From contig OZ076418.1 of NCBI GenBank assembly GCA_964187785.1, positions 54,808,001-54,872,000 of the forward strand: 64,000 bases of DNA, written 5' to 3'. Numbering within the stretch: the first letter of the stretch is position 1; each line of letters starts with the position of its first letter. This DNA comes from Amphiscolops sp. MND2022. Taxonomy: Eukaryota. The notes beneath the pieces were generated by a model that saw only the letters and a list, made by a program, of their open reading frames with translations, was not told where the DNA came from and did not search any database. This document shows positions 19,251 to 61,204 of this stretch, piece by piece. The position numbers and the translations under genes were made by a program.

Positions 19251-19625
19251 TTATATTTTGAAAATCATTTCAAATAAATGTTTCCTAATAAATGAATTAT
19301 TGATTATTCGTTAACATTTCGACATATTTCATAAATTCCAAAACAAATTTCATATTCGTACTCTACACAATAATACCTTTCGAACGATATACAACACTTC
19401 ATTAAAATCAATAATTTCAAAAAATTTTCCATGCTTTTCCCAGTTTTTGCATTTAATTTTTCCATGATTTTTTTTGAACTATGTTTGGGATTCAATAACA
19501 ATTACAATAGTTATTTGAAGTCAATCGAATGGATATTCATGGAAAAATTAGTAAAAACCTGAGAGCAAGTTGATACAATTTAACACAGCGAGGGCATCGT
19601 GCCAAGTTTTGATAAGAATGATTTT

Positions 19626-41559: not shown

Positions 41560-43575
41560 TGTTTGTGAAGTGCTCTATTGTCTTTTGACTTATTAAGATT
41601 TTTGATGTACGAGTTTATTCAAGAAAAGAAATATAAGTCTCAATTCACTTTCAATTTACTTTCTAAAGTAATTATGCGAGTCCGATCAAGAATAATTATA
41701 AGCCTCAATTATAGTCTAATTCGTGAACTCTTAGTTCACTTTTCTTCTATTTTCTTGTTTGAAAACTAAAAGTAATCTCGTACTTAAAATTTTCGCGACT
41801 GTGCCTTCCTACACTTCAACAAAAGCTGTCTCAGGTGTGAGTTCGGATGGAAGGACTTTATTTCTACGACCCGGGAGAAGAGTGTGTTTTGGTTCAGAAA
41901 TATGTAAATTAAATCTGTTTTGGTTTATATTAAAGTTGTAATAAATGTCACTCATACAAAAGCAAAGTGCACAGATCAGCATGAATAGAAAGAAAATAAT
42001 TAAATCAAATCTAAAATCTATCTTTGAATAATACGAGTTAAGTTAGTTAGAAAGAAAGTAAGTTATTAAGTTGTTCTTGTGTTTTACCAGATCAAGAGGT
42101 GAAGCCTCTTTATAAGATGCAGCGATAGCTTGCAAGGTGTTTATAGTCCACTAATTGTCACGGACTGAAAAGAGAGCTACTTGCTTCTCTTGATTAAAGA
42201 ACAACAGATTGTTGTACTGGTTTTATAGAGTGTGCTATACAGCTACTCTTTGTCTCAGATTGAGAACTGTTCGACTTGAAGAGTCAAACAAAAACTAAGT
42301 TATTTAAGTCTCTTATAACCCAGCTAAAGCTGTGGTTCTTGGTTTAGAGTCAGTATATCTACCAGACTTTGGTTTAGAGTCTACTATAAAGCAGAGACTA
42401 TTCAATCTTTGTTAAACAAAGACGGTATGATAGCTTCTGTTCGAAGTCAAAAGTCAATTAGAACTCCAACGTAAGAGAAGGTTTGCTTTAACGATGAAAG
42501 CAGATTTTTGTTTTGTTTTAGATTGAAAATATTATAAGACTAAGACTTAGCTTGCCTTTACTTGAAGGCAGATTAGAAAATAGTTAAAGACTTTAATTGC
42601 TTCAATATGAAAGCAGAGTTGAAAAGCTTAAGACTTAATTTGTTTTGGCTCGAAAAATAAATCAAGATAAAATTGCTTCGCTTTGAAAGCGGATTGAAAA
42701 TCGTCTAAGACAAGTTTGCTTTAACAAGAAAGCAGGCTTGACAAAATATTCTAAGTTAAAATTGCTTTGCTTTGAAAGCAGGCTGAAAATCGTCAAACAT
42801 AAAATTGCTTTAACGAGAAAGCAGGCTTGACAAAATATTCTAAGTTAAAGTTGCTTTGATTTGAAAGCAGAGTGAAAATCGTCTAAGTTAAGACTGAGCC
42901 AAGACTTGTAAAAATTTAAGAGTTGCTGTTTAAAGTTTAAGTTAAGAAAAAGAAAAGACTTAGACAAAAAAAACACTAAGACAAAATAAGTTAAAGTTAA
43001 AGCTGAGAAAATATCTTAGAAAAATGAAAGCTCCAAAAGAAAATTGAAATGGTTTAACTAACAGTTACTGCGCCGCGCTGATGAAGGGGATTGAACCCAA
43101 GAAGAAAGATTGAGAAGTAGGAGTGTTCGGATTGATCGATTTTGTATTATTCCAAAAGAAGAGCTCTGAGAGGTGAAAATTTCGTCTGCTTTTATACTAA
43201 ATTTGACCGCTTCGTCAACCAATAAAATTCAATCACAGTTGTGATTGGCTGACGAGCATGACGTCATATGACGTCAAGTCATATGACTATACAAACGAAA
43301 GTGTTTTGTATGTGTTATTCGCAGGCATAGTGTCCACGACAAAATGATGTCATTTGACGTCATGATCAAATAAAGAATGTGTGCAGCGTCGCTGAACAAA
43401 GCGAGTGAACACGTTCGAGCGTGTTCAAAATTCAGAGCTGAGCGAGAAATTAATGAAGATAAACAGCGCAAGTTACAAAAGATAAAATTACATGTTACAA
43501 GTTTTAGAGTTTTATTCTTTTTGGATTTTGACGGTAAGTTTCTTTCTTTTTGTTTGCCATAAGTCGCACACGACA
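41560..43575 (-). repeat. 3' LTR (2016 bp)
   Basis: Direct repeat of 58085-60097 with only about half a dozen differences seen by eye. The minus strand reads TGTCGTGTGCG...CTTCACAAACA. Confidence 0.97.
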
Positions 43576-43590
43576 TCTCACCCGGGTTTC
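43576..43590 (-). other. Putative polypurine-tract position (atypical: GAAACCCGGGTGAGA)
   Basis: It abuts the TG start of the 3' LTR but is only partly purine-rich. Confidence 0.4.
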
Positions 43591-43633
43591 AAGATTGGAG
43601 AAATTGTAACTGGGGTACACAGGTTGTTTATGC

Positions 43634-44621
43634 TCACTTTGATTCTTCCAGGTTAACTTCGATGAACATCGTGTCATTCAGGATGAATGGGGAGTTGCTT
43701 TTGAAAAGTTGGCTGTGTGGGAAAGGGGATGATGAAGAAGGGGAAACATATGCTCGGGTTTCCATAGCTTGTACAAGGTCGTACAAAACAGGCTGAGTTT
43801 TTGTGGTCTTTTGGATCTATTGTTTTTGTTCAAGTATCAGTAGTCTCACTCAAATTTATCACATTGATTCGAAATATTAGTTTGAAAGGCCAAGGAAGAA
43901 TTGGGTCGAACTCACCAGGAAGGATGGTAATAACTAATGAAGCGCTTTCTCCAGTGGCAGGAGAGCATCCGTAAGGATAAAGCTTCATATGAAAACGGTA
44001 CCCGTGAGTTGATGTATAAAATGGAGGGCTCTGAAAATTGCAGGGTAATTTGGGGTGAGGGTCGATACCCTTTTGCAATTCTAGTTCAGCAGCCTTTGCG
44101 TTATCAAACATAAGGCTGAAGGAGCAAATTCTCCAGATTAGTTTTTTGTCTCTTCCGCAATCAATACTGTGAATACGGTCATAGAGGTCCATTATTAGGC
44201 ATTTGAAGGGTTTCAATTCATCAAGTCGTCTTTGTGTATCTGTTGATTCGGGTTCGGTTGGCGAAGGGGTATGAAGAGGAGTATTTACAGGTTGTTCAAC
44301 AGTAGGTGTTATTGTCTTCTTTTGAAGATTTTGGACGACAATTTGGAGTTGTTGAATAGTTCTGTCCTGTTGTCTTCGTAGGTTCTTTTCGTGCTCTAGT
44401 TGTTCGGACAGATTTGCAACTAGTAATTGCGTTGCGTGCAGGTATTGAGCGGTTTTGAGATTGCTGAGTGGAAACTTGCTGACGAGCATTTTCATCTGGG
44501 CGAGGTCGTTGTCGGTGCATGAAGGTAGGCTGGAATTTGTTATTTGATTTCGTATTGTTGTTATCTCATTTTCTACAGCAGCTAGTCTAAGAGTGGATTC
44601 TTCTAATAATTGTTTTTCCAT
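43634..44621 (-). pseudogene. TRAF-like protein (coiled coil + MATH/TRAF-C domain), with a nonsense codon and a frameshift near the C-terminus
   Basis: ORF 43830..44621 has heptad-rich N-terminal stretches, then LIWRI, SPPFYTSTHGYRFHMKLYPYG, SASLVITILPGEFDPILPWPF. Past TGA 43830-43832 the frame continues TKTIDPKDHKNSACFVRP...CFPFFI. A shifted frame gives the final strand FILNDTMFIEVNLEESK*. Confidence 0.85.
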
Positions 44622-44623
44622 TT

Positions 44624-45085
44624 TCAGATGAAGGCAGAGATAGCCCGTAGGGGTACTGATAATCTCTGATGTTTAAGAGTAGTATTTTCAATAGTAAATT
44701 CTTGTCTTTTTGAGTCCCAGAAGATAATTCTCCACTGATTGACTTCTTCTTTGAGAGTATAGTTGAGATTGTAATGAAATCTGGGATTTCTGGTTATCGA
44801 GTATTTTTGAGCGGCTTCTTCACTTCTTTTTTGTTTTTCTAAAGCTTGTTTCAATGAATATTGTGTTTTCTTCTTTTTAATACTACCGTTAAAGACAAAT
44901 GTATTAAGATTATTTGGAGGTGTAACAGTGGCGTCTAAGATTGTTTGACTGAGTGGTCGTTGAGGAATAGGAGATTCACATGAAGTGATGTCAAACATAG
45001 GAAAATCGAGTATGTCCTTCTCAGTTAGAGTTTCCTTTGAAAGAAGAAGTTCCAGATCTGATGAAAGAGAGGTGTGGTCGGTCAT
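44624..45085 (-). CDS. Unknown 153-aa accessory ORF
   Basis: Open frame lying 26 nt after the env stop and ending 2 nt before the TRAF-like ATG. Confidence 0.6.
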   Translation of the reverse strand: MTDHTSLSSDLELLLSKETLTEKDILDFPMFDITSCESPIPQRPLSQTILDATVTPPNNLNTFVFNGSIKKKKTQYSLKQALEKQKRSEEAAQKYSITRNPRFHYNLNYTLKEEVNQWRIIFWDSKRQEFTIENTTLKHQRLSVPLRAISAFI

Positions 45086-45111
45086 TCTTTGCTAAAAATA
45101 GAATACAAAAG

Positions 45112-47247
45112 TTAAATTGGTGATATTGTGTCTAAACGATTAGTTGCTGGCAGACGATTTATGACAGGGTAGATATGTTCAGAAGCATCTTGATTGTCTG
45201 TACTGAATGTTGTCATCGGAATATCTTTTGTAGAAGGATTGAACATTGAATGGAAAATTGAAACCATAAAAAGATTGTAAGTTGCAGATAGTAGAATTTT
45301 ACCGAATCCAACAGACGCTCCAGTAAGTCGGTGTATTTCAAAGGCTCTGACAATAGTTACTGTCACATCGATAATTAATTTTATGAAAAGGAAAACTGCA
45401 AACCAAATTCCACATTTTTCTAGCCAATATCCAATTGTACCAAATGTTTGTCTAAATTTGCTTTCAAAGTAACCAGGAGATATCATGTTATCAACAAAGA
45501 AATCCATTTTTGGTGCGTAGTATGTGTATCCTTCAGGTCCTTTCTTTGAGTGTGAAGGGACAATGAGTTTTCTTGTGAATTTTTGTAAAGCATTCTTCGA
45601 TGCAGAACTCATGAGGATGTTGTCCCAAAATTCGGTTAGCTGGCCTTTCGTGTACATTCCAGCGTTGATTGATTGGGGAAACTGATCCCTTGTGAATGGT
45701 GCTACATCTTTTGGCGAGAAGATAGCAGGTCTATCTCTATGTGTGATTTGCGGCGTTAGTGAGAACCAAGAGTTCTTATCGTCCATGTCCATTTGAAAAA
45801 GGTTCTTTATGTGGTCCGAACAGTTCTGAGGCATCGCATCAGGTAAAGTTTGCCTCGTGATGGGATCTACAAATTTGATTTGTCCTTTGTAAAATATGGG
45901 TATCTTATCGTAGCACTCGTTCATCGTGTGAAGAGGTGATCTGACTAGAGGACAAGAGTAAAGCCATGCAAGGCTTCCATCAGTTTCTAAGAACATTGAT
46001 CTGTTTCCAGTCAACATATATCCAGCTAGTCTTGAGTTCTCAAGTGAAAGCATCAGAATAGTAAGTATGTGTGATCGTTCTTGTTCACACTGATTTTTCA
46101 AAAGATGAAGTTCTGAGGCTTTGAGTGCTCTGGAGCTCTCAAAGAAAAGATAGTCCAGTTTAGTTCCTTGTTGTAATTCGTAGTCCATATTCAACCATGT
46201 TCCATAATATGGGTCTGAATGGTAGTTACTAGCAAACCAGAGTTTACTATGGCCTGGGTCATCTCTTTCTTGATCATTAGGGGAATAGTGCATCATGTGA
46301 ACTCTGTCCTCTTGTTGGATCATATTTCGTCCAGTTTTCATGTCAAATCCACCATAAAGGATAGCAACAAACAAAGATTCATAGGTTGTGGGATATACAT
46401 CTGATGGTTTATTACAAAGTTTTTGTGGTCTGTTTTTGACTTCAAAGAGATATTTGTTTTCTGAATTGTTCTTGCTAACAATATAATACTGGTCGTCATT
46501 TTTGATCATGTTTACGTACTCTTCTTTCAGTACGGTGAGAATACAGTTGTCTGGATTATCCCATATATAAGCATATGGGTCGAGTGAGGTGCTATCACAT
46601 CCGAGTTCATCTAGTTTGCAGGGTAGAGGTTGTCCATTTCTGTTCATTATAGTTCCGTCTCTGAGTTTGACGTTCAGAGTAATATCTTGGATGTGAGTCT
46701 CGAAGGTATCTTTTTCAATCCATTCAAAACCATCACATTCATTTTTGAATGTGTCGTCTGCATCGCCATTCCATCTAAGATGTTGTTCAATTACTCCTTT
46801 TTTCATTGTAATCTGATGATTTAGTAGAGTTATTGGTGATCCTTCAGCTGCGAGTCTGCATTGTGCAGGCGATAAATCGAGATATGAGGTAATAGTCTTT
46901 TGTTTGATATCGATGCTGGAGTGGTCGTGCATTCCACAATAGAATCTGTTCCTTTGATGTTTGACACTGCATATTGTAGCGTTAATTTCTGTTCGAAAAT
47001 GTTTTGTGTACATCTTGACTTTGGCATGGCTCATGTCTATGTTCTCAGGAGCCACGTTACAAGGTTTGACTTGGTTGAGAGAGTAGAGATTGTTTTCTGA
47101 CATTTCACTGCAATCGTAATGTGAGACTGTGACTGTAGGTGCGATATCATCCAGTATGGGCTGCTTTTGGTCGGCGTAGATGAATTTTATTGAAAACATC
47201 AAAATAAAAATAACCAAATATTTACAGTATATCTTTTCACTATCCAT
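45112..47247 (-). CDS. env: Envelope glycoprotein, chuvirus-G / herpes-gB-like (class III fusogen)
   Basis: N-terminal signal peptide, Cys-rich ectodomain with HYDC...LYSLNQVKPC...ICSVKHQRNRFYCGMHDH, and C-terminal hydrophobic segments (WFAVFLFIKLIIDVTV...). This pattern matches my recollection of chuvirus-like glycoproteins. Confidence 0.8.
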   Translation of the reverse strand: MDSEKIYCKYLVIFILMFSIKFIYADQKQPILDDIAPTVTVSHYDCSEMSENNLYSLNQVKPCNVAPENIDMSHAKVKMYTKHFRTEINATICSVKHQRNRFYCGMHDHSSIDIKQKTITSYLDLSPAQCRLAAEGSPITLLNHQITMKKGVIEQHLRWNGDADDTFKNECDGFEWIEKDTFETHIQDITLNVKLRDGTIMNRNGQPLPCKLDELGCDSTSLDPYAYIWDNPDNCILTVLKEEYVNMIKNDDQYYIVSKNNSENKYLFEVKNRPQKLCNKPSDVYPTTYESLFVAILYGGFDMKTGRNMIQQEDRVHMMHYSPNDQERDDPGHSKLWFASNYHSDPYYGTWLNMDYELQQGTKLDYLFFESSRALKASELHLLKNQCEQERSHILTILMLSLENSRLAGYMLTGNRSMFLETDGSLAWLYSCPLVRSPLHTMNECYDKIPIFYKGQIKFVDPITRQTLPDAMPQNCSDHIKNLFQMDMDDKNSWFSLTPQITHRDRPAIFSPKDVAPFTRDQFPQSINAGMYTKGQLTEFWDNILMSSASKNALQKFTRKLIVPSHSKKGPEGYTYYAPKMDFFVDNMISPGYFESKFRQTFGTIGYWLEKCGIWFAVFLFIKLIIDVTVTIVRAFEIHRLTGASVGFGKILLSATYNLFMVSIFHSMFNPSTKDIPMTTFSTDNQDASEHIYPVINRLPATNRLDTISPI

Positions 47248-47528
47248 TATCTACTAATGAAAACGGTACTCCGAAAATACTATAAAAGGTTTAAGAAAAG
47301 AAAGGTAGACTTGCTAACCTTGAAAAGGAAGCTTTGCTTTCGATGAAGCAGTGAGAAGAGCAGCTTTGCTTTCAATAGAGCAGCGAGAAATCTGTAGCAC
47401 TTGGCAATACAGAATGTTTGTTCAAATCGAACTGAAAAGAGAGCAAGAATGAATTCTGCTTGAAGTTGACAACTTAGTCAAAGATGTGAAATGGATGATA
47501 GTCCTTTTCGTGAAAGGCTTTGATGAAT

Positions 47529-48255
47529 ACACGTCTAAAAACCGTGTCTTCTCGCTTAAGAAAATATGATCTGTTTTAAACAGACAAAAAGAGCGAGGAG
47601 TTATTTATAGACGGCAGAGTTTGACACTTAGGTCGTTACCGTCTCTTCTTGCAAGGTAAAAGGAAAAGTAGCACACGTCTAAAAACCGTGTCTTCCTGCT
47701 AAAAGGAACGTGATCTCTTTGAGACCAAGAAGAAAAGAAAAATAGGAGCAGGGAGTTATTTATAGACGGCAGAGATTGATACTGAGATCGTTACCGTCTC
47801 TTCTTGCCTGAGAAAGAGAGAGTTAAGAAGGTTAAGTAAAGGCAAGGCTACACGTCCAAAAAACCGTGTCTTCCCACCATAGAAAAAGTCATCTAAGTGG
47901 CCAGCTTAGATCAAAGAGAGAAATAAAGGTAGGGAGTTATTTATACACGGCAGAGTTTGATACGAACCGTCGTTCGATCGTTACCGTGTCTTTGTCAGAC
48001 TTTTGTGACAAATTGTAATATACGTCTATACACCGTATCTTCGTTGAGCTTTGCAACGGAGTTATTTATACACGGCAGAGTTTGATACTGAGATCGTTAC
48101 CGTGTCTTCTTGCAAGGATAAAATTGAATACGCACGTCCAAAACCCGTGCCTTCCTGCTAGAGAGAAAAGTGATCTATTTTAGATCGAATAAAAATGAGA
48201 GCAGGGAGTTGTTTATACACGGCAGAGTTTGATACAAAGATCGTTACCGTGTCTT
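47529..48255. ncRNA. Five-unit tandem structured element (~150-bp units, multiple covarying stems) upstream of env
   Basis: Each unit has hairpin A, a CTTC.../...GGAG stem, TTATTTAT, and hairpin B with a conserved internal loop CAGAGTTT/GTTA. Compensatory base changes occur between units. Confidence 0.6.
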
Positions 48256-48340
48256 GCACCTAAAAAGAAGTTGAATAAAAGGTTTAATTAATCACAGTAC
48301 ACAGTAATAAAGAGAAAATAATAAAAGGTAGAGAACAGAT

Positions 48341-48739
48341 TTATTTTTGCAAGCTGAGGATTTCTTTTATTTTTGCAATGTAGAATTCTTCAAAGGAGCC
48401 AAGTCCCGTTTCCATAAAAGAAGACAATTCTTCTAGGAGTGGTAGATCAAAGAGTTGTATATTCGTCTCAGGGCTATCGATGTAGACTGATAAGGCGATG
48501 GCTAATTCAGCAAAGAATTTTGTTTTCTCTTCTACTCTTATGAAGACTTTGGTTTTGGGCTTTAATACTGTATAGCCTCTAGCTGTAAGCCAAAATTGGT
48601 ATCGGTATGACCACTGCAGTTCCTTCACAATTAATAGTTCAGGGCTTTTGATGGGGTCGACTAAATTATAGATTGATACTGGAAGTTTTAGTTTAACTGT
48701 TTCAATTGCGTCTTCTTCCCAGAGGTTGTGGATGAACAT
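48341..48739 (-). CDS. Unknown 132-aa accessory ORF (paralogue of 48879..49199)
   Basis: Open frame that aligns by eye to the 106-aa ORF (LQWSY/LKWSF; ELAIALSVYIDSPETNIQLFDLPLLEEL / QLSEALDNYAEEPESHITQFQLHILGEL). Confidence 0.7.
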   Translation of the reverse strand: MFIHNLWEEDAIETVKLKLPVSIYNLVDPIKSPELLIVKELQWSYRYQFWLTARGYTVLKPKTKVFIRVEEKTKFFAELAIALSVYIDSPETNIQLFDLPLLEELSSFMETGLGSFEEFYIAKIKEILSLQK

Positions 48740-48878
48740 TGATTTTTATTGATTTCTCCGTTTTCTATTTTGAGGGAGTTGATTTCTTGCTAATTGGGGG
48801 AGTAGTTGTGGAAGGATGCGTCTGGTCCAAATTTGTCTGACGATTTCTTCTCGTAGACTGAAGCTCATTCAATTTTAT

Positions 48879-49199
48879 TTATGCTGCTGTTGTATCGGCT
48901 AACTCTCCAAGGATATGGAGTTGAAATTGGGTGATGTGTGATTCAGGTTCTTCAGCGTAATTATCCAAAGCCTCAGATAGTTGTTCTCGGAGGAATCTAT
49001 TGTTAGCGATTTCTAAGGTGGAGACTTTGCTTTTGTTTTCTACAGGGTGTACTGTTATCAGAATGAAACTGGGTTTGATAAAGGACCACTTGAGTTTGAT
49101 GATATTGAAGTTTTCAGTGATGCCTGAAGGAGTAGTTATTTTAAAGGGGCAGTTGAATTCTACTTCATCAATTTCGCCTTCATCAAAAAATATGTCCAT
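48879..49199 (-). CDS. Unknown 106-aa accessory ORF
   Basis: Open frame whose ATG directly follows the TAA of the upstream ORF. Paralogous to the 132-aa ORF. Confidence 0.7.
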   Translation of the reverse strand: MDIFFDEGEIDEVEFNCPFKITTPSGITENFNIIKLKWSFIKPSFILITVHPVENKSKVSTLEIANNRFLREQLSEALDNYAEEPESHITQFQLHILGELADTTAA

Positions 49200-49415
49200 T
49201 TAAATACTATTGTCAGCATTCAGGAATGCATCCGTTGGTGCGTTTCCAAAGAATAGAAAGATGTGATGGAAATAGTCCCAGTATATAGACGTTGGGGGAA
49301 CAGTGATAATTCTCTTCTGTTTTGTTTGGTGGTGCTGAAGGGAAACGTGAAAAGTCAAATTTCGGAAATCTTGTCTAACTATTCTGTAGAAGTCGTTGTT
49401 TATCTTGATGTACAT
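49200..49415 (-). CDS. Unknown 71-aa accessory ORF
   Basis: Open frame with a TAAATG stop-start junction to the next ORF. Confidence 0.5.
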   Translation of the reverse strand: MYIKINNDFYRIVRQDFRNLTFHVSLQHHQTKQKRIITVPPTSIYWDYFHHIFLFFGNAPTDAFLNADNSI

Positions 49416-50962: not shown

Positions 50963-53900
50963 TTAGTCTTTGTATCCTTTTCTTTCTAGATCCCGTAGTG
51001 AGCTGTAAGGATGAGAGCGCTTGTATTTTGCTTTTACTTTTGACGTGAGATCAGCAACTTTATTTTTCTTTTTTGGCGATGAAGAAGTAGATTGCTCAGC
51101 TTCATGAAATTGCGGCGTTGTCCTCAAAATAGTAGGAACACGAATAGGCATAGGAGTCATAGGAAGTATAGGAGTTTGTAGCGGCGGCAATGGTGAAATT
51201 GTTAAATTTTGATAATTATGATCATCATTAGTAGACGTAGCAGGAGATTGAATTCCTGAGTCAGCAGTAGGTGAAAGAGTAGCGTGGTTTTTGTTCATTT
51301 CTTGATAATTAGTATTTTCTTGTAGCGGCGATATGATGAAAGGCATTACATCTAGGGAACATTTTTGTTGATTTGAATTGTAGTCATTTATTTGCGACTG
51401 CACTAGATGTTTGTAGAAATCACTATCTTTTGTTATAGGCGGCGTATAGTTAGTGATTAGAGGAGGGAGTCTTTCCTCTTTAGGAAAATATTCAATTAGG
51501 TGATTGCGATGAGTAACTTTAACGTTTTCTGGGTTAGCGTCCTCTTGAATTTCGTACGTCGTGTTTGTTATTTGTTTAGTTACTGTAAAAGGGCCAACAC
51601 GTAATTGTTTTAACTTTTGTGATCTGCTTAAGTCGGCAGTGTGATTCTCTAAGAATACTTTTTGTCCGATGTTGATAGGTCGTCCGAGTTTGAATCGGTT
51701 TCTGTATTCGTGTGCTTTAGAAGTAATTTGGCGGCATCGTTGATAGGTTGACGAATAGATTCGTTTGAAGTCGTTTTCACGAGCAATGAGTTCGTCTGAG
51801 AGTTGTGGCCTGAGTAATCGATCCAGGGATTTGTTCGGTAGTTGGTTTTCGCTGTGTGTATGGGGTTTCAATCCTTCACAGTAGTCGGATCTGCATTGTT
51901 TGTTCTTGTCTCGTATTAGTCCAAGTTTTAACGTCATAGGAACTTGTGGTTTTGTCCCGAACACTATTTCATATGGGGTAAGTCCCGTAGTGTAGTTTAC
52001 ACTTGTGTTATGAGCGAATGCAAATTTCGGTGCTAGTTTTGACCAATTATTACCTGACTCGTTAGTGAAGTTTCTCCAATATCGTGTAAGGTGCTGATTT
52101 TGTACTTCTACTTTTCCGTTTGTCCATGGTGAGTAAGTTGTACGTGGTGCGAGAGTTATTCCGAATTCTTTAGTCCAGTTGATGAAGTCACTGTTGATAA
52201 ATGCTGTCCCGTTATCGTGTATTATCTTCTGAGGGATTCCATAGGATGTGATCCATTTTTCTAATGCAGTAATAGTAGCTTGTGCGCTAGTATCTTTTAC
52301 TGGGTAGACACCAATGAATCTTGAAAATGCGTCAACTACTACTAAGCAATGGTTGTTAGAATTGCTACTAGGCCTGAGCGGGCCTTTATGGTCTATATGA
52401 ATGGTTTTGAAAGGTGTAGTTTCAAGTTCTCCCCATTGTTCCAAGGGAGCTTCGTGTAAGTCATGACGTTTTGACTTATTGGTTTGACATTCGATACAGT
52501 CTTCTATGAGATAAACTATCCATTTGTATCGTCCTGGCCAGAAGAAATATTGTCTAATATTTTCAAAGGTCTTAAATATTCCAGGATGACCACTGTGGCT
52601 GTGTGTGTGAGCAAGTTTGAAAAGTGGTAGAAACAATGATAGAGGAACACATATTTTCATCTCAGTTTTGCTTGTTTCCTGAACTGTCTCGTTGTAGCAT
52701 AGGAGGTTGGTTTCTTCGTCTATAAAGAGTTGCTCAAATCGGTTGAAGTATGACAGTAGTGCTTTAGATTGATTGATATCATGTGTTTTTGTTGGTCGTT
52801 TATCTGATTTCTTTATCCAACTGCGTACTTTTTGTAGTACTGGATCATTGAGTTGTTCTTCAACTAATGTAGTTACATCTAGATCAGCAGTTTTTGCAAA
52901 ATCACTCAATTTTTGTATCAATTCCTTTGTGTCTACCTCTGGGTGTAATTCTGAGTCTATGTTGGATTTTAGAATTGGTTTTCGTGACTGGTTTCTTCGG
53001 ATTGATTCGTTTGCAAGTGAGAAATCGTGTAAGAATTCGGAGTCCTTCTGATCGAAGTTTAGTTCTGCTATTTCGTTGTCGCTGTTGTAGCCGTCATCTT
53101 GTTGTTCTTCAATTTCGCTGTAGGTTTCCTCTTCGATGGTGTAATTTGTGAAGTAGGGGCAAACATCTGAGCAAAGTCGTTTATATTGGTTTATTGTCTT
53201 GCCGAGTTTAAAGCAATCGGTCATGTCTTGCATTGTAGCTAAGACTTCATTGTCTTCTATGTAATCTTCGACATATTGTTCGTCACCATCATTCTTTAGG
53301 TGTAGGATTTGTCTATCGTTTCCATGTTGGCAGATTATCGGAAAGAAGTCGTTGCATGAGATATCTTGGCTATCTTCGTGTTTGATAGTGTAATGCATCT
53401 GGTCTCCCTTTTCATCATAGAATGATATCTCTTTCGGTATTTCTTTATGCTGTAGCTGTAATTTGTTGATGTCGGACAGTGTTACGTTTCGGCTAAGTAT
53501 ATCTGGGAAAGCTAAGTTTGAACCTGGCGTCCAGATTATCTTCAAGTTGTGAAATTTTGTTATTATAACTTGGTACTTGAAGAACCGATGAGAAAGTTGT
53601 CCTTTTCGTCCCCATAAGTAGAGAATGGGTTTGTGGTCACAGTATAGGTAGATTGGAAATGGTGAGCCAATAATGTAGTGCTCATAGGTTTGTAGTGCAG
53701 ATACAATACCACAAAGTTCTCGGTGGAGGGTAGACATTTTTTGTTCTGCTTTATCAAAGACACGAGAGTTGAAAGAGACTATTCGTTTTCCTTCTGGAAA
53801 TTGTTGAACTAAGATACATCCAGTCCCTACATTCGAAGAGTCAACGTGAATATGAAAAGGGTATTCAGTTGAAGGAACTGCTAAAATAGTATCTTCTGAG

Positions 53901-56422
53901 ATTCTTTCTTTTATCTGGTTGAAAAGTGTTTCGTGTTGTTCAGTCCATTTGAAAGGTGTAGTGTCTTTTATCAATTCATAGAATGGTTGACTATCGACGT
54001 GTAGATTCTTGATATAGCAGCTATAAAAACCTAAACATCCAAGTACTTTCATTACGTCTCGTTTGCATTCCGGTGACTTCAAATTCTTCAAGTCTTGTAC
54101 TCTTTTAGCTACTGGTTGAATTCCGTCTTGAGATATAACATGTCCCAGGAATTTTACTTTTCTCAAGAAGAAGTGTGTCTTGTCAGGTGCGGCTTTTAGT
54201 CCGCCTTTTCGTAGGAGTTGGTGATACTCGTGTATGATGGTGAACATCTCGCCTTTGGTTTGCGATTGGAGAAGACTATCATCAAGATAGGTGATTGCTT
54301 GTTTCTTCTTTACAAGTGGTTCGAAGTTAATCGCCATCATTCGGCTGAACCATTGAGGGAGTCCACAAAGGCCATAGAATCCAACTTGATAGGTGTATTG
54401 TTTTCCACCTACGATGAAACTAGTTAGTTTCTGAGTTTCTTCACTAAGAGGTACTTGGTGATATGCACAAGAAAGATCACTTGCTGTAAAATACTTGCCG
54501 TTGATTCTTGTCATAATCATTTGGACTGGCTCGAGTGGCCAAGAGTAGTTTGTTAAGTCAGTGATAGAATTTAGATATCTAGCGTCAATAACAAGTTTAA
54601 CATAGTCAGCTTTAGGTAAGAGAATGATTGGATTTACGAATAGTGAACCAAGCTCGTCGTCGTCTCCCATTTCTCTAATGATGCCCGTTTCTTGTAGTTG
54701 TCCAAGAAGTTTTTCAAGCTTATCTTTCAGATGGAGTGGAACTTTGCTAGGACGTTGTTTGCGGAGTTCTGAGTTTGGTTTTAGAGTGACGTGAAACTTC
54801 TGTTTGGTTTGACCAATATCGAATTTGTGTTGTGAGTATACATCTCTGGAGTCAATGATCATATCTATTAACATAACAAGTTCTTCGTCTTCTAAATCGG
54901 TGTATTGAAAATCGAATTGCTTGATGAAGTCTTTTATTTCTTGAGGTTGATATTGAAGGTAGTAGTCAATAAGATCATTGTTTAACTCTTTAGGTCTCAG
55001 TATTGGAAATTGTTCCTTACACGGAGGCTGACATGATTTTGAATCCTTGGTAAAGTCTGTTTCTAGTTCGTCCTTTTCATCCGTCCATTCGTTCGTATAG
55101 TTGTCAATTTTATCTTCTATAGAGTTCGTAGACTTGTTAGCTATTTTACAGTCTAGTTCATTCCTGGAGATGATCTGAATGAGAATGCCAGAGTCAGTGA
55201 AAGTGTCTTTCAGTATTTTCAGTACTTCATTCCAAGAGAGCTTGTCAAGTCCACAACCAATCTTTGGCATTGTTATTATATGAACATTGTTGAGGAGAGC
55301 GTGACCTCTCATGTTCTCGAGTGATATCCGAAGGTTCTCAAGAGTAGGTTTTTCAAAGAACTTGTTCTTTGTGACATGGTTGTATATGAGTCTATTTGCA
55401 TCATTATCCCAGAAGGGAATGACTGAACCAACAAAAGCTTTTGACTTGTAACAATATTCTTGTAGTCCACTGATGTGGTTGGTGATAGTTTCAGCAAATC
55501 CTTTACTCATTTTTGCATCTGCTGATATGCAATGAGCAATAGCTGCTTGGCTTTCAAAGATTGTATCATCGTTCCCATTAATGATACGTACACCATCTCT
55601 GAAGTCTGATTCGAGTGGTAGTGTCGAGTGTAGTAAAAAGCATTCGTTATACTGATCATTCTCAGATAGTATACAGTTAACCATTTTAACACAATCTTTT
55701 ATTTGGTACTTTGGTCGTTCGTAGTCTAGTATGTCTAATGCTGAGTATCCCAAAATTCCTTTGTCAAGAGTTATTTGATGATTCTTGTTGTTCTCCATTA
55801 GAATTGGTAGATATTGTTCTGACTGTGTGCAAAGAACATTTACAAAGTCTAGTCCTGAGTTAGTTACTTTTTGATGAGGGATGAAGGTTGTTCCTGGTGC
55901 AAAGTTTATTTGTTCATCTTCTGGACGGTATTTGTAGACACGAGATGTCTTAGCATCAACATGTATCTGATGTGGCACTCGTATTGCTCTGATTAGTGAC
56001 AAATAGGGGTAAGGTTTAGTAGCACAAAGACTGCCATAGCAAATTGTATTAGGAGTGTCTTTGAGTTCTAATGCAGGAATATCGAAATGGAGTTTAGAGA
56101 TATACTTTCTACAGAATTCAATACCCAACAAAATTGCTGTTTTGGTTTCTGTTATCCAAAGTTGTAGTTGAAAACAGTGTTCTCCATCAAAGTCAAAACT
56201 GAAGTTTAGTGTTGTGTGACCCAACATAGGTATTTCTTCTCCAGTGTATGTTCTAGTCTTTTGTTTGCTTCTTATTACTGTGATTGGTTGAAGAAACTGA
56301 GAAATTTCATAAAAAGTGCGATAATTAATGATAGAGCAAGCTGCTCCAGTATCGACCATGAATTCGATTTCAAGTCCACTATCTTTTTTAGAGTCTCCGG
56401 TGGGAAAATAGAAAACGTTCAT
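50963..56422 (-). CDS. pol: Pol: aspartic protease - spacer - macrodomain - RT - RNase H - integrase (GPF)
   Basis: Motifs in order: MVDTGA (PR); AHCISAD...MPKIGCGLD (macro); YLDD (RT); HVDSS...YCDHKP (RH); HTHSHSGH...CIEC, IHIDH, VVDAFSR, HDNG and KVE (IN); VGPF. The frame is open upstream to the slippery site at 56476-56482. Confidence 0.97.
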   Translation of the reverse strand: MNVFYFPTGDSKKDSGLEIEFMVDTGAACSIINYRTFYEISQFLQPITVIRSKQKTRTYTGEEIPMLGHTTLNFSFDFDGEHCFQLQLWITETKTAILLGIEFCRKYISKLHFDIPALELKDTPNTICYGSLCATKPYPYLSLIRAIRVPHQIHVDAKTSRVYKYRPEDEQINFAPGTTFIPHQKVTNSGLDFVNVLCTQSEQYLPILMENNKNHQITLDKGILGYSALDILDYERPKYQIKDCVKMVNCILSENDQYNECFLLHSTLPLESDFRDGVRIINGNDDTIFESQAAIAHCISADAKMSKGFAETITNHISGLQEYCYKSKAFVGSVIPFWDNDANRLIYNHVTKNKFFEKPTLENLRISLENMRGHALLNNVHIITMPKIGCGLDKLSWNEVLKILKDTFTDSGILIQIISRNELDCKIANKSTNSIEDKIDNYTNEWTDEKDELETDFTKDSKSCQPPCKEQFPILRPKELNNDLIDYYLQYQPQEIKDFIKQFDFQYTDLEDEELVMLIDMIIDSRDVYSQHKFDIGQTKQKFHVTLKPNSELRKQRPSKVPLHLKDKLEKLLGQLQETGIIREMGDDDELGSLFVNPIILLPKADYVKLVIDARYLNSITDLTNYSWPLEPVQMIMTRINGKYFTASDLSCAYHQVPLSEETQKLTSFIVGGKQYTYQVGFYGLCGLPQWFSRMMAINFEPLVKKKQAITYLDDSLLQSQTKGEMFTIIHEYHQLLRKGGLKAAPDKTHFFLRKVKFLGHVISQDGIQPVAKRVQDLKNLKSPECKRDVMKVLGCLGFYSCYIKNLHVDSQPFYELIKDTTPFKWTEQHETLFNQIKERISEDTILAVPSTEYPFHIHVDSSNVGTGCILVQQFPEGKRIVSFNSRVFDKAEQKMSTLHRELCGIVSALQTYEHYIIGSPFPIYLYCDHKPILYLWGRKGQLSHRFFKYQVIITKFHNLKIIWTPGSNLAFPDILSRNVTLSDINKLQLQHKEIPKEISFYDEKGDQMHYTIKHEDSQDISCNDFFPIICQHGNDRQILHLKNDGDEQYVEDYIEDNEVLATMQDMTDCFKLGKTINQYKRLCSDVCPYFTNYTIEEETYSEIEEQQDDGYNSDNEIAELNFDQKDSEFLHDFSLANESIRRNQSRKPILKSNIDSELHPEVDTKELIQKLSDFAKTADLDVTTLVEEQLNDPVLQKVRSWIKKSDKRPTKTHDINQSKALLSYFNRFEQLFIDEETNLLCYNETVQETSKTEMKICVPLSLFLPLFKLAHTHSHSGHPGIFKTFENIRQYFFWPGRYKWIVYLIEDCIECQTNKSKRHDLHEAPLEQWGELETTPFKTIHIDHKGPLRPSSNSNNHCLVVVDAFSRFIGVYPVKDTSAQATITALEKWITSYGIPQKIIHDNGTAFINSDFINWTKEFGITLAPRTTYSPWTNGKVEVQNQHLTRYWRNFTNESGNNWSKLAPKFAFAHNTSVNYTTGLTPYEIVFGTKPQVPMTLKLGLIRDKNKQCRSDYCEGLKPHTHSENQLPNKSLDRLLRPQLSDELIARENDFKRIYSSTYQRCRQITSKAHEYRNRFKLGRPINIGQKVFLENHTADLSRSQKLKQLRVGPFTVTKQITNTTYEIQEDANPENVKVTHRNHLIEYFPKEERLPPLITNYTPPITKDSDFYKHLVQSQINDYNSNQQKCSLDVMPFIISPLQENTNYQEMNKNHATLSPTADSGIQSPATSTNDDHNYQNLTISPLPPLQTPILPMTPMPIRVPTILRTTPQFHEAEQSTSSSPKKKNKVADLTSKVKAKYKRSHPYSSLRDLERKGYKD

Positions 56423-56469
56423 ATGAAAACGTGATTTGAAGTTACTTTCTTCATCTGGTTGCGGAGACC

Positions 56470-57762
56470 TTAGTAGTTTAAAGCAAAGTAGTTGGAGATT
56501 GAGTTTACCATCTCTTGAGAGTCGTCATCAATGAATTGCACATTGTTAGAGAGAGCATTAGAATTGTTCTGCGGGAAATTTCGGTTATATTGAAAATTGG
56601 AGTTGTTATTCTGCCTTGCAGGAAAGTTGAAGTTATTTTGCCCAGTTCGCTGATTCTGTCCTTGATTAGAGTTACTCTGGTTGTTATGATTCTGGTTGTT
56701 GAAATTTTGGTTTCTATTATACGGCTGACTAAAGTTGTTATTATACCTTTGCGAAGAGTTGGAGTTGTGGTAGTTTTGCGATCCGAAGTTCGGTCCCTTT
56801 CTCTTGTTGTAGTCATTGGTGAAGGTTGGCTTTTTCTGCTGGTTATCACGATTGTATTGACGTTTTCGTTCATCATCGAAGGCTTTAGTTCTACAATATT
56901 GCAGTGTATGCCCGTTTCGCCTACAGTAGTGACAGAAGCGAGTTGCATTCTGTCTGGACTTATTATTCACATCGTTGGTTCGTGTGTTGGCTTGATTTAA
57001 AGCATTCACTTGTTGTTCTTTCAGAAGTGTTGAAAGTTCTCTGACTTGTTTCTCTAACGAATCTAGTTTGGAGTTCTGCTCGTTAGTTGGATTTGGTACG
57101 AAATCTGAGCTTACTGTATAGACCAAGTCCTTGTTGGCTATGTGGTCTTTGAAGTTATCCCAAGTTGTGTTAGGATGTTCTATCAGGTATTCGTGAGCTT
57201 TTCTTCTAAGTCCTGAAGGGGTTAGTCCCTTGGTTGTGAAGTCAATATACTTTTGATTTCTCAAGTTTTGTTGAGCGCCTCTTTCATCTTGATTAGCTCC
57301 GGCATCGATCGGCCATCCTTTGTCAACTGCTTGTTTGACTCGGTGATAGAAATTTTTGATTAGTTCTTCTTTTCCTCTGACACAGTTTTCAGCAGTTATT
57401 CTGTGTCTGTATTTATCTCTGTCATCTGAGAAGCGAGTTATGAAGGCTGTTCTGACTTGAATCCAAGTAGGTAGTGGGTTACCTACGTTAAATCCTTCGT
57501 ACCACTCTGCGGCTGGTCCGCGGAGGAGAGACGAGAAAAGTGCTTTCTTTCTGAAGAGGTATCTAGCTGCTTCGCCAGCATCATTCGGTGGTGATCCGAG
57601 AGAGAAGTCAATTTTATTTTCTACTGTTAGAAGAAATGATTTAACATCTTGGTCTGGGTCGTCCCCAGAGAACTTGTCCAATGCCAGGTCAGGAAAAGAG
57701 ACTGCGTTCTGAGCCATTCTGAGGGTTGTGATAGTTTGGTTCTTCTTGTGATTGAGTTTCAT
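56470..57762 (-). CDS. gag: Gag with C-terminal CCHC knuckle and Asn/Gln-rich tail
   Basis: Retrotransposon-gag-like LDKFSG...LLRGPAAEWY, knuckle CHYCRRNGHTLQYC (C-x2-C-x4-H-x4-C), and position between the PBS and pol. Confidence 0.95.
   Translation of the reverse strand: MKLNHKKNQTITTLRMAQNAVSFPDLALDKFSGDDPDQDVKSFLLTVENKIDFSLGSPPNDAGEAARYLFRKKALFSSLLRGPAAEWYEGFNVGNPLPTWIQVRTAFITRFSDDRDKYRHRITAENCVRGKEELIKNFYHRVKQAVDKGWPIDAGANQDERGAQQNLRNQKYIDFTTKGLTPSGLRRKAHEYLIEHPNTTWDNFKDHIANKDLVYTVSSDFVPNPTNEQNSKLDSLEKQVRELSTLLKEQQVNALNQANTRTNDVNNKSRQNATRFCHYCRRNGHTLQYCRTKAFDDERKRQYNRDNQQKKPTFTNDYNKRKGPNFGSQNYHNSNSSQRYNNNFSQPYNRNQNFNNQNHNNQSNSNQGQNQRTGQNNFNFPARQNNNSNFQYNRNFPQNNSNALSNNVQFIDDDSQEMVNSISNYFALNY
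56476..56482 (-). promoter_or_regulatory. -1 ribosomal frameshift slippery heptamer T TTA AAC
   Basis: An X XXY YYZ heptamer in the gag frame, one codon before TAA. The -1 frame (FKLLRSPQPDEESNFKSRFHMNVF) is open into pol. Confidence 0.85.
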
Positions 57763-58068
57763 TCAGTTAAGGTATGATTGAATAATATTTAGCGATGGGG
57801 TCTTCAAGGTGTATATTGAAAATGAGTGCACAGAGACAAGTGACAAGGGTGATGAATACAAGAAAGATTCCAACAAAGAGTAGGTAGTCCGGGTCTTCAG
57901 GAGATATCACTAATCTCATAGACCTCAGTTATGGTGGAGATGGGTTGATATCGTCCAGATAGTTAGTTTTATGACAAGTGTGACAAAGCTAGTGACAAGG
58001 TGAAAGAAAACCAAAAACCAGATTAGTGAATAGTCCGGGTCTTCAAAAGTTATCATGAAATGGGTTTG

Positions 58069-58085
58069 CCTCACTGGTCGCACCA
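58069..58085 (-). other. Primer-binding site TGGTGCGACCAGTGAGG
   Basis: Starts with TGG at the 5' LTR end. The priming tRNA could not be identified by eye. Confidence 0.8.
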
Positions 58086-60097
58086 GTTTGTGAAGTGCTC
58101 TATTGTCTTTTGACTTATTAAGATTTTTGATGTACGAGTTTATTCAAGAAAAGAAATATAAGTCTCAATTCACTTTCAATTTACTTTCTAAAGTAATTAT
58201 GCGAGTCCGATCAAGAATAATTATAAGCCTCAATTATAGTCTAATTCGTGAACTCTTAGTTCACTTTTCTTCTATTTTCTTGTTTGAAAACTAAAAGTAA
58301 TCTCGTACTTAAAATTTTCGCGACTGTGCCTTCCTACACTTCAACAAAAGCTGTCTCAGGTGTGAGTTCGGATGGAAGGACTTTATTTCTACGACCCGGG
58401 AGAAGAGTGTGTTTTGGTTCAGAAATATGTAAATTAAATCTGTTTTGGTTTATATTAAAGTTGTAATAAATGTCACTCATACAAAAGCAAAGTGCACAGA
58501 TCAGCATGAATAGAAAGAAAATAATTAAATCAAATCTAAAATCTATCTTTGAATAATACGAGTTAAGTTAGTTAGAAAGAAAGTAAGTTATTAAGTTGTT
58601 CTTGTGTTTTACCAGATCAAGAGGTGAAGCCTCTTTATAAGATGCAGCGATAGCTTGCAAGGTGTTTATAGTCCACTAATTGTCACGGACTGAAAAGAGC
58701 TACTTGCTTCTCTTGATTAAAGAACAACAGATTGTTGTACTGGTTTTATAGAGTGTGCTATACAGCTACTCTTTGTCTCAGATTGAGAACTGTTCGACTT
58801 GAAGAGTCAAACAAAAACTAAGTTATTTAAGTCTCTTATAACCCAGCTAAAGCTGTGGTTCTTGGTTTAGAGTCAGTATATCTACCAGACTTTGGTTTAG
58901 AGTCTACTATAAAGCAGAGACTATTCAATCTTTGTTAAACAAAGACGGTATGATAGCTTCTGTTCGAAGTCAAAAGTCAATTAGAACTCCAACGTAAGAG
59001 AAGGTTTGCTTTAACGATGAAAGCAGATTTTTGTTTTGTTTTAGATTGAAAATATTATAAGACTAAGACTTAGCTTGCCTTTACTTGAAGGCAGATTAGA
59101 AAATAGTTAAAGACTTTAATTGCTTCAATATGAAAGCAGAGTTGAAAAGCTTAAGACTTAATTTGTTTTGGCTCGAAAAATAAACTAAGATAAAATTGCT
59201 TCGCTTTGAAAGCGGATTGAAAATCGTCTAAGACAAGTTTGCTTTAACAAGAAAGCAGGCTTGACAAAATATTCTAAGTTAAAATTGCTTTGCTTTGAAA
59301 GCAGGCTGAAAATCGTCAAACATAAAATTGCTTTAACGAGAAAGCAGGCTTGACAAAATATTCTAAGTTAAAGTTGCTTTGATTTGAAAGCAGAGTGAAA
59401 ATCGTCTAAGTTAAGACTGAGCCAAGACTTGTAAAAATTTAAGAGTTGCTGTTTAAAGTTTAAGTTAAGAAAAAGAAAAGACTTAGACAAAAAAACACTA
59501 AGACAAAATAAGTTAAAGTTAAAGCTGAGAAAATATCTTAGAAAAATGAAAGCTCCAAAAGAAAATTGAAATGGTTTAACTAACAGTTACTGCGCCGCGC
59601 TGATGAAGGGGATTGAACCCAAGAAGAAAGATTGAGAAGTAGGAGTGTTCGGATTGATCGATTTTGTATTATTCCAAAAGAAGAGCTCTGAGAGGTGAAA
59701 ATTTCGTCTGCTTTTATACTAAATTTGACCGCTTCGTCAACCAATAAAATTCAATCACAGTTGTGATTGGCTGACGAGCATGACGTCATATGACGTCAAG
59801 TCATATGACTATACAAACGAAAGTGTTTTGTATGTGTTATTCGCAGGCATAGTGTCCACGACAAAATGATGTCATTTGACGTCATGATCAAATAAGGAAT
59901 GTGTGCAGCGTCGCTGAACAAAGCGAGTGAACACGTTCGAGCGTGTTCAAAATTCAGAGCTGAGCGAGAAATTAATAAAGATAAACAGCGCAAGTTACAA
60001 AAGATAAAATTACATGTTACAAGTTTTAGAGTTTTATTCTTTTTGGATTTTGACGGTAAGTTTCTTTCTTTTTGTTTGCCATAAGTCGCACACGACA
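58085..60097 (-). repeat. 5' LTR (about 2013 bp)
   Basis: Direct repeat of 41560-43575, ending ...GTCGCACACGACA at 60097 on the plus strand. Confidence 0.97.
59712..59884 (-). promoter_or_regulatory. Probable U3 promoter: TATA box, CCAAT boxes and three TGACGTCA (CRE) palindromes (same in the 3' LTR at 43190-43362)
   Basis: Minus-strand TATAAAA at 59712-59718, CCAAT/ATTGG about 30-55 bp upstream, and TGACGTCA at 59781, 59791 and 59877. Confidence 0.6.
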
Positions 60098-61204
60098 TAT
60101 TACATTTGAGCTTATAGACGCATTTTGCCCGGACAAGAGTTGGTCTATAGTTATAACGAAACTTTGCGCTTCGATTAGATTAGCTTCGCTCGCCCCTTCA
60201 AGTTCAGGACTTCAAGTGACTAGGCTATGTAGGTTGAGTGTTTAGGCTCAAGGTAAAAAAGAAAGTGGAGCAACTGTATTTTCAGCATCCAAAACCAATG
60301 GTTCGTAGGCATCGCCTCGTGTTGGTTTGGATGAGTGCAATACACTCACTAAAAATTATAAAAAAAGAGTTGATGCAAGAGCAACTTCAATAACTCTAGT
60401 CAATAATTCGTAGGCTTCGCCTCGTGTTGACTGGGATGGATGTGGTTCTCCTATTCGACTCGCAAAAACGAAAATAAGCACACAAATGAAACGGGCTGAG
60501 AAACCCACAAAAAAACAAAAAAAAGTTGAAGCAAGTGTAAATTCACCCATCTAGCCAGCAGTTCGTGGGCTTCGTCTAACGTTGGCTTAGATGGATGTGT
60601 TTCTCTTGTTAGGCTCACAAAAAAACCAAAAAAGGGGGGCCTAGACAACTCCAATTAAGAAAACTTCAAAATATGTTGAAAAGGTTAAGGGGTTGACAAA
60701 AGACCAATGCATGACAACTCTTGAGTAGCAGCAAAACTTTTGAGTTGCTGCATGGCATGCAGAGTATCTTTGCCAAACTACAAAAAATAATGAGAAATTA
60801 CACAAACCATTCTGCCTAAAATAAAAAATTAAATGACATTAGATTAGATTAGAACTTAGAAAAAAGTGAAAAAGTAGGAGTCGGTCCAAATGCATCTGTA
60901 GACAATAGTTCGTAGGCTTCGCCTCGTGTTGGCTAGGTTGGTTTTGAAGCGCTTGTTCCACTTCAAAAAATACAAAAAATTGAATAAAACAAAAAAACTG
61001 AAAAACTCCAAAATCCAAAAATAGGAAAAGAAAGAGTCGGTGCAACTGCATCTTATTCATCTGAAGCCAGTGGTTTGTAGGCTTCGCCTCGTGTTGGCTT
61101 GGATGGCTTTGATGCTCTTGTCCACTGGCAAAAAAACGAAAAAATCCAAAATGAAAAATCGAACAAAAATGCAAATCCAAAAACTTTTTTTTGGGGCCCA
61201 GATA

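Follow-up and report, generated by a model that had tools for sequence, protein, structure and literature searches.

The DNA considered here is a stretch of 64,000 nucleotides (nt) from Amphiscolops sp. MND2022 (GenBank assembly GCA_964187785.1, contig OZ076418.1, forward-strand positions 54,808,001 to 54,872,000), referred to below as the window, with positions counted from its first letter. It harbors a long terminal repeat (LTR) element of the Ty3/Gypsy type, which lies at 41561-60098 on the minus strand and spans 18,538 bp, 14.5 kb of it enclosed between the two LTRs. An earlier reading by a model that saw only the letters, termed here the sequence-only reading, had described 2-kb near-identical LTRs, intact gag, pol and env genes, at least five extra open reading frames (ORFs) on the same strand, some of them paralogous, and a structured non-coding array. 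Its bounds of 41560-60097 are off by one base; the rest of this inventory stands. The LTR pair is 99.65% identical across 2016 aligned columns, with four mismatches and two gaps, gag, pol and env are all uninterrupted, and the extra frames, of 71, 106, 132 and 153 amino acids (aa) together with a TRAF-like gene, are conserved in relatives. In the direction of transcription the layout is LTR, primer binding site (PBS), gag, pol, orf71/orf106/orf132, hairpin array, env, orf153, TRAF-like gene, polypurine tract (PPT) and LTR, with the following features:

58086..60098, minus strand: 5' LTR, 2013 bp, from the LTR pair alignment
59170-59414 (5' LTR) and 42664-42891 (3' LTR), minus strand: tandem repeat block of 43-46/89 bp
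58069..58085, minus strand: primer binding site TGGTGCGACCAGTGAGG, 17 nt, complementary to a tRNA 3' end finishing in CCA
56470..57762, minus strand: gag, 430 aa, uninterrupted; capsid-like domain and a single CCHC knuckle
56476..56482, minus strand: slippery heptamer TTTAAAC in X XXY YYZ phase, 6 nt ahead of the gag stop
50963..56482, minus strand: pol, 1819 aa from the first ATG at 56422, uninterrupted
55172..55552, minus strand: TARG1/OARD1-type macrodomain, Pol aa ~291-417, between protease and reverse transcriptase
49200..49415, minus strand: orf71, 71 aa, directly abutting orf106
48879..49199, minus strand: orf106, 106 aa, of a small alpha/beta protein family
48341..48739, minus strand: orf132, 132 aa, paralogue of orf106
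47513..48259, minus strand: hairpin array; five units, each 116-190 nt long and comprising hairpins A, B and C
45112..47247, minus strand: env, 711 aa, uninterrupted, downstream of pol
44624..45085, minus strand: orf153, 153 aa, directly after env
43634..44621, minus strand: TRAF-like gene, coiled coil and TRAF-C/MATH domain (PF21355, 6e-16, Pfam)
43577..43590, minus strand: polypurine-tract-like …CCCGGGTGAG, immediately upstream of the 3' LTR
41561..43576, minus strand: 3' LTR, 2016 bp, from the LTR pair alignment

The element is a recent insertion and a young, largely intact copy. Its insertion site is a spacer between arrays of a satellite. This satellite, with a period of ~795 bp, extends over 22250-40767 and ~61250-64000 and is twice interrupted by one ~1.9-kb spacer, of which one copy is empty (32528-34430) and the other (40768-41560 and 60099-~61250) is occupied by the element, so that an empty-site control is present inside the window. 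The element flanks match this empty paralogous spacer at 99% and 97%, joining between 33317 and 33318. Relative to the empty site, the repeat-defined LTR ends leave flanks that abut with zero overlap. These termini are A, which equals the base following the PPT, and AAC, which equals the spacer that precedes the PBS (41558-41566, 60094-60102). Trimming these 1 and 3 bases, which the LTR ends have in common with the PPT side and the PBS spacer, exposes TG…CA ends, and the trimmed ends give an imperfect 4-bp duplication, AATA/AACA. The LTR tandem block contains about five copies of a 43-46-bp unit in an 89-bp higher order, each with the palindrome TGCTTT…AAAGCA, and is possibly an enhancer-like repeat in U3.

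Related loci (L001, L002, L003, L004, L008 and L009) derive from ERZ25074608, where the window is represented by contig ctg178016, and from ERZ26859043. Pol identity to the window copy ranges from 58 to 96% over L001 (69%), L002 (58%) and L003. The window copy has two degraded siblings, L003, which is 88% identical to it in DNA, and L004; L001, L002, L008 and L009, with LTR pairs that are 99.4-100% identical, are apparently young copies. A clean 4-bp target-site duplication, ATTG, is found in L002. The 17-mer primer binding site is identical in L001, L002, L003, L008 and L009, and GGGTGAG of the polypurine-like tract is common to the window, L001 and L002; neither the window nor the related loci yielded any tRNA gene. 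In all six loci Pol bears a macrodomain and env is followed immediately by an orf153-like frame; the interval between pol and env is the variable part. The order env-orf153 is kept in five diverged lineages from two samples, with the TRAF-like gene next in four of the five. More specifically, a TRAF-MATH ORF follows the orf153-like frame in L001, L002, L003, L004 and L008, and the ORF in that place in L009 has no Pfam match. The G+C content is 36-38%. Fragments of the macrodomain-reverse transcriptase region, 80% and 52% identical, occur in the JGI metagenome Ga0126343, which is that of Cyphastrea sp. 2, a stony coral (preprint).

The replicative core places the element among known retroelements. 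Gag matches Retrotrans_gag (PF03732, 2.5e-6, Pfam), harbors its single knuckle, CX2CX4HX4C, at aa 277, and is 51% identical to the Gag proteins of L001 and L002. The pol frame is -1 relative to gag with a 55-nt overlap, and the TTTAAAC heptamer is also present in identical phase in L001; the sequence identifies it as the site of the -1 frameshift by which pol would be reached. Pol is ordered as protease (PR), a ~185-aa stretch, macrodomain, reverse transcriptase (RT), RNase H, a ~300-aa bridge, integrase (IN) and a 180-aa tail. Pfam positions PR at 16-105, RT at 639-763, RNase H at 826-957 and IN at 1259-1642, and the associated motifs are DTGA in PR, YLDD in RT, and HHCC plus rve and SH3-like segments in IN. 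The closest PDB entry is Ty3 Gag-Pol (7q5b, 8e-61), with foamy virus, cauliflower mosaic virus and other retroviral RTs at 1e-22 or weaker. By Pol order, RT affinity, LTR/PBS/PPT arrangement and Gag, the element is assigned to Ty3/Gypsy (Metaviridae), as the sequence-only reading had it. The ~185 aa before the macrodomain, the bridge (aa 958-1258) and the 180-aa tail have no Pfam or PDB match; members of the ‘ancient’ errantivirus group have RNase H followed by a ‘mini’ domain within the bridge to IN (PMC13524379).

The same reading had proposed a gB/chuvirus-like fusogen, and this assignment is borne out. Env matches PF24664, the class III fusion glycoprotein of Monjiviricetes, at 4e-39 (Pfam), has a signal-like hydrophobic N-terminus (aa 5-25), one transmembrane segment (~608-638) and 16 Cys residues, and is 52-60% identical to the Env proteins of L002 and L001. 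No furin motif is present in Env, which has no sequence match in PDB and no relative in IMG/VR. It is classed by these sequence features as a class III, Monjiviricetes G/gB-like fusion glycoprotein. In the proposed cycle Env would supply a cell-to-cell or extracellular route, and the remainder would follow ordinary LTR retroelement replication.

Within Pol, the domain between PR and RT aligns over 126 residues with human TARG1 structures (2l8r, 4j5q, 2eee) at E 3e-22 (phmmer, PDB), and the Pfam Macro model scores just 0.02 on it. The sequence-only reading had named the type correctly but had taken it for an accessory ORF, when it is a domain of Pol. Relatives at E<1e-3 number 2482 and are mostly cellular-type proteins of ~140-150 aa. 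The catalytic pair of human TARG1, Lys84 and Asp125, is aligned with Lys352 and Asp393 of Pol. Among the nine family Pols examined, the lysine is present in all and the aspartate in seven, with glutamate in its place in the other two. Two further proteins carry the same domain type. The polyprotein of Diabrotica undecimpunctata virus 1 (QIT20099.1) has an N-terminal TARG1-type macrodomain, 43-46% identical to the Pol domain, with both the lysine and the aspartate kept. MGL4388093.1, a partial RT protein filed under a Brevinema metagenome-assembled genome and probably a eukaryotic contamination of it, has one after RNase H. With the domain type present in a beetle virus and in a partial RT protein, macrodomains have been captured by replicating elements on more than one occasion. 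By its sequence, the Pol domain would most likely strip mono-ADP-ribose added by host PARP-type enzymes to element or host proteins or nucleic acids, an action proposed by analogy with the macrodomains of plus-strand RNA viruses.

The second domain that points towards the host is the TRAF-like protein. The intact L001 protein aligns over residues 55-239 with the TRAF domains of TRAF1/5/2/3, comprising the TRAF-N coiled coil and TRAF-C, at E ~3e-13, while no RING or zf-TRAF domain is matched in Pfam at E up to 10 and the TRAF-like proteins are 250-300 aa long. The family's protein is thus described, from its domain content, as TRAF-domain-only and TRAF1-like in lacking RING and zinc fingers. 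It would serve as a decoy, or exert a dominant-negative effect, in innate signalling that depends on TRAFs, a proposal made because the trimerising coiled coil and the receptor-binding TRAF-C are kept and the RING/zinc-finger signalling half is gone. The window gene itself contains one premature stop and one frameshift relative to the L001 protein, and its MATH half is interrupted. A shared intron behind these breaks was considered and rejected, the window and L004 genes being differently interrupted. Consequently the identity given by the sequence-only reading holds, but not the full ‘toolkit’ that it saw at this locus, and the gene must have been dispensable for insertion of the window copy.

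An immune-evasion role for the element is plausible on these domain identities, and infectivity, along with the countering of ADP-ribosylation and innate signalling, is likewise suggested by them. A competing explanation gives the macrodomain and the TRAF-like protein a part in the life cycle of the element itself, in place of immune evasion. The task of the macrodomain could be to remove ADP-ribose from the ends of element RNA or cDNA, from Gag or from IN, or to modulate PARP1-dependent repair at integration sites, and the MATH adaptor could recruit a host protein for particle trafficking or turnover. In favor of such roles, the macrodomain is part of the replicase polyprotein and adjoins RT, cellular TARG1-type macrodomains occur fused to DNA ligase III, PNKP and NADAR modules, which ties this domain type to nucleic-acid end processing, and MATH domains are general peptide-binding adaptors. 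On the other hand, between lineages the macrodomain is only 36-47% identical against 58-69% for the rest of Pol, a faster divergence that is more typical of host-interface domains. Furthermore, the family keeps the whole TRAF-N/TRAF-C receptor-binding unit and not a lone MATH domain. RNA-virus macrodomains are known for counter-defence against antiviral PARPs, and the occurrence of the same macrodomain type in the picorna-like insect virus fits that function. Exclusive service to the element's own cycle is accordingly doubtful, although it retains appreciable weight.

Upstream of env lies the hairpin array, which the sequence-only reading had noted as a structured non-coding array and which proves to consist of five units with three helices each. 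Hairpin A has an outer stem of 6-8 bp, an internal loop and an inner stem of 3-4 bp, hairpin B is variable in sequence and length, and hairpin C is of 5 bp. The covariation alignment comprises the five window units and the five orthologous units of L003. RNAalifold gives 24 pairs, 8 of them with double compensatory changes, and no broken cells. Canonical pairing is found in 100% of cells, as opposed to 21-43% when partners are slid by 1-3 columns and 94% in the best of 1000 column shuffles, and at least 8 covarying pairs arose in 1 of 1000 column shuffles. Relative to shuffles, the fold of the sense strand has a z of -3.3 and that of the antisense strand -1.8, and the G-U pairs of the array exist on the sense strand only. 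The core of hairpin A recurs ~11 times in L001 in a 61-bp tandem repeat located upstream of orf72 rather than env, and persists although synonymous sites between the window and L001 are saturated. No match at the gathering threshold was obtained with Rfam 15 in the whole window. A co-occurrence of orf153 with the array was considered and rejected, as L002, L008 and L009 carry orf153 without the array. Immediately upstream of its env (19990-20217), L001 also has a 76-bp unit repeated three times in tandem, every copy of which contains two short, perfect hairpins; the sequence of these units differs from that of the window array and their position is similar.

The array is a candidate cis-acting RNA element. 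Acceptor-like polypyrimidine-AG signals occur shortly upstream of orf71 (40 nt), env (35 nt before the ATG) and orf153. Since the array lies upstream of the acceptor-like signal of env, it would fall within a would-be intron of the env mRNA and would mark unspliced RNA. By analogy with the constitutive transport element and the Rev response element (RRE), it would most likely be a multimeric binding platform on that RNA for export or packaging. Alternatively, the array could work as DNA, as an internal promoter or enhancer or as insulator-like sites driving subgenomic env and accessory transcripts. Such internal regulatory arrays or promoters are in use in Drosophila gypsy and in foamy viruses, and TATAAATA adjoins hairpin A in every window unit, the array being 280-1000 nt upstream of env. 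However, the TATA box is not conserved in the L001 core (GGTAAATA), and the L001 array precedes orf72 instead of env. Moreover, compensatory changes in three helices, including G-U pairs that are valid in sense RNA only, and the better folding of the sense strand are properties of a transcript. A function at the level of DNA is unlikely by this evidence, and the array is treated here as an RNA element.

The small accessory genes are less readily interpreted. Orf71 is 41% identical to a 72-aa ORF at the equivalent position in L001. Orf106 and orf132 both match the same ORFs in L001 and L002 and are hence regarded as paralogous, in agreement with the sequence-only reading; their family has one to three copies per element, and 22 homologues of orf106 were collected. 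In L002 (8193-8534) and L009 (6980-7327), both from sample ERZ26859043, a gene of this family is situated in the 5' leader before gag and not in the pol-env interval. The AlphaFold2 model of orf106 (pLDDT 82, pTM 0.71) predicts four strands and two helices; neither PDB, with a best E of 0.15, nor BFVD, with a best E of 0.02, contains a significant fold match. Orf153, with 54 homologues, has an N-terminus that is acidic and Leu-rich, a basic patch and, as its conserved part, a C-terminal domain of ~70 aa; it has no Pfam or PDB sequence match, and its AlphaFold2 model from 24 sequences reaches a pLDDT of only 51. Homologous frames are positioned between env and the next ORF in L001, L002, L008 and L009. 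Judged by this conservation, orf71, orf106/132 and orf153 are real genes. Other frames were rejected as genes: in siblings, a 100-aa ORF in the LTR and two further ORFs, of 70 and 52 aa, either carry interruptions or are not conserved, and an antisense ORF downstream of pol, with a GT…AG intron-like gap, is unconserved in L001 and L002 and displays no frame-specific conservation in L003 and L004. A 50-aa ORF in the leader before gag (57767-57919, minus strand) contains a 30-residue hydrophobic stretch and is 90% identical in L003.

Ratios of nonsynonymous to synonymous substitution (dN/dS), calculated against L003, are 0.08 for gag, 0.04-0.08 for pol, 0.06 for env and 0.06 for orf71, followed by 0.20 for orf106, 0.14-0.19 for orf153 and 0.18-0.21 for the TRAF-like gene. 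All of the accessory genes measured (orf71, orf106, orf153 and TRAF-like) are under purifying selection. Synteny in diverged lineages together with low dN/dS establishes that the accessory block belongs to the family; the sequence-only reading had named a one-off capture, absent from sibling copies, as the outcome that would tell against it, and the block is instead present, syntenic and selected in those copies. These results also bear on the explanation that the accessory genes are passengers, captured once from the host or from another element and without a role for the element. Host ORFs are known to be captured by LTR elements in the region downstream of pol (PMC6431247, PMC5408684), and three of the sampled copies have a broken TRAF-like gene. 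Against this stand one gene order across lineages down to 58% Pol identity and in two samples, dN/dS values of 0.06-0.21 and the retention of macrodomain catalytic residues across lineages, which together make mere passage highly improbable. Lastly, a chimeric assembly or nested composite of two mis-joined elements, as a metagenome-style HiFi assembly in satellite DNA surroundings might produce, can be dismissed as the origin of the locus, given that both LTRs, PBS and PPT are in register, both flanks fit a single contiguous paralogous empty site to the base, and the full architecture was assembled independently on at least six other contigs.

Each part of the element has a precedent, and it is the combination that was not found in the literature open to search. 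A macrodomain-bearing Gypsy Pol was not described in the full-text literature searched by macrodomain with retrotransposon or LTR terms, a search that did not cover Repbase, Dfam or GyDB. Within the literature searched, the novelty proposed by the sequence-only reading survives for the combination, and is too strong where it implies that the parts lack precedent. Ty3/gypsy elements with a gB-type Env are distributed across Metazoa, including Cnidaria, and are catalogued as gag-pol-env only (Chary and Hayashi, eLife 2026, PMC13524379). The element resembles these ancient errantiviruses in its GAG-POL-ENV order, tRNA primer binding site, gB-like Env downstream of pol and recent multicopy families. 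It differs from them in its Pol macrodomain, at least five further genes, hairpin array and family size of 18.5-20 kb, and the text of the ancient errantivirus catalogue (PMC13524379) contains no mention of macro, TRAF, MATH or accessory ORFs.

Another comparison is offered by the planarian Burro/GYPSM1 elements, giant Gypsy-like elements with a mononegavirus-like Env and MATH_TRAF_C (Arkhipova and Yushenova, 2019, PMC6431247). Compared by description, Burro shares the Gypsy backbone, a mononegavirus-like glycoprotein, MATH_TRAF_C (as a separate ORF in one species), an enzyme between PR and RT, and long LTRs. That enzyme, however, is a dUTPase where the window element has the macrodomain, and Burro also carries BIR, BCL2-like and ankyrin modules; BIR and BCL2 domains have no Pfam match in the window element. 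In addition, Burro encodes a single polyprotein of ~4900-5100 aa with env in frame between gag and pol, whereas gag, pol, env and the TRAF gene of the window element are separate ORFs with env downstream of pol. The mosquito element Anakin likewise pairs an LTR retroelement with a Jingchuvirales/Monjiviricetes-type class III glycoprotein, from a chuvirus, but has a BEL/Pao (Belpaoviridae) backbone and an insect host, with no macro or TRAF genes reported (Dezordi et al., 2020, PMC7642597).

Acquired macrodomains are also encountered elsewhere. Fish epsilon-like endogenous retroviruses, as cited in PMC4977317, include some with macro-domain or CNPase ORFs (Basta et al., 2009); so far as that citation describes them, they too are reverse-transcribing elements with an acquired macro domain, but belong to vertebrate Retroviridae and carry it as an additional ORF, in contrast to the TARG1-type domain within a Metaviridae Pol. 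Plus-strand RNA viruses (coronavirus nsp3 Mac1, alphavirus nsP3, hepatitis E virus) have the macrodomain in the replicase polyprotein, as here, though without reverse transcription. Viral macrodomains are mostly of MacroD type and not of TARG1 type. With complex retroviruses (lentiviruses, deltaretroviruses, spumaviruses, lokiretroviruses) the element appears to share small genes around env, structured RNA near env and acceptor-like signals; unlike them, its accessory genes have no homology to theirs, and its RT groups with Ty3.

Several further features of the window lie outside the element. Two adjacent ORFs at 18504-20225 (minus strand) match the Pox_A32 packaging ATPase family (4e-11, 1e-9) and are probably a polinton/polintovirus-like remnant; elements of this kind are reported to be widespread in stony corals (PMC11131425). 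A similar ORF is found at 15474-15926 of L004, near the degraded copy. A separate retroelement at 12316-17738 (plus strand) contains a 918-aa ORF with an RVT_1 match (3e-7); ahead of it are two ORFs, 419 and 175 aa long, for which Pfam has no match. Positions 1-5000 hold tandemly repeated units of ~1030 bp, each of them with a 135-aa ATG-initiated ORF that has no Pfam match. Finally, a 189-aa ORF at 9547-10116 (plus strand) has a weak SET-domain match (1e-4) and may be either part of a host gene or cargo of an element.

Taken as a whole, the element is read as a recently inserted copy of a multi-lineage, env-bearing Ty3/Gypsy family of the ‘ancient errantivirus’ type, equipped with accessory genes to which the functions proposed above would apply. 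This reading is considered reasonably probable, and a number of observations weigh against it. The TRAF-like gene is broken in the window copy and, independently, in siblings L003 and L004, so that genomic spread of the family does not depend on it. L002, L008 and L009 lack the array, which is thus not essential to the family. With orf153 unmodelled and orf106 without a structural relative, more than half of the ‘toolkit’ has no assignable function, and the macrodomain could serve the element's own replication in place of immune evasion. The exact Env protein is found on one contig only, identical sister copies not having been seen. Moreover, the window copy has no clean target-site duplication when compared with the paralogous empty site, which would reflect either the imperfect 4-bp duplication or an unprocessed linear cDNA joined without duplication.

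The finding nonetheless broadens the view of this group, in that some env-bearing Gypsy elements, so far regarded as gag-pol-env, keep an extra gene set under selection. Two members of this set point at the host defence pathways of ADP-ribosylation and TRAF signalling, which are otherwise known to be targeted by RNA viruses and large DNA viruses, and the family yields what is modelled as a new small protein fold along with a covariation-supported RNA motif without an Rfam match. Questions are thereby opened regarding PARP- and TRAF-based immunity against invertebrate retroelements and the origin of regulatory complexity in reverse-transcribing viruses. A bolder and rather unlikely proposition is that this Metaviridae lineage evolved independently into ‘complex’ enveloped retroviruses, with a replicase-embedded ADP-ribosylhydrolase, a TRAF decoy, small proteins of new fold and a Rev/RRE-like RNA element read by one of them. 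If true, the regulatory complexity of retroviruses and their antagonism of host defence would have arisen a second time, in invertebrates.

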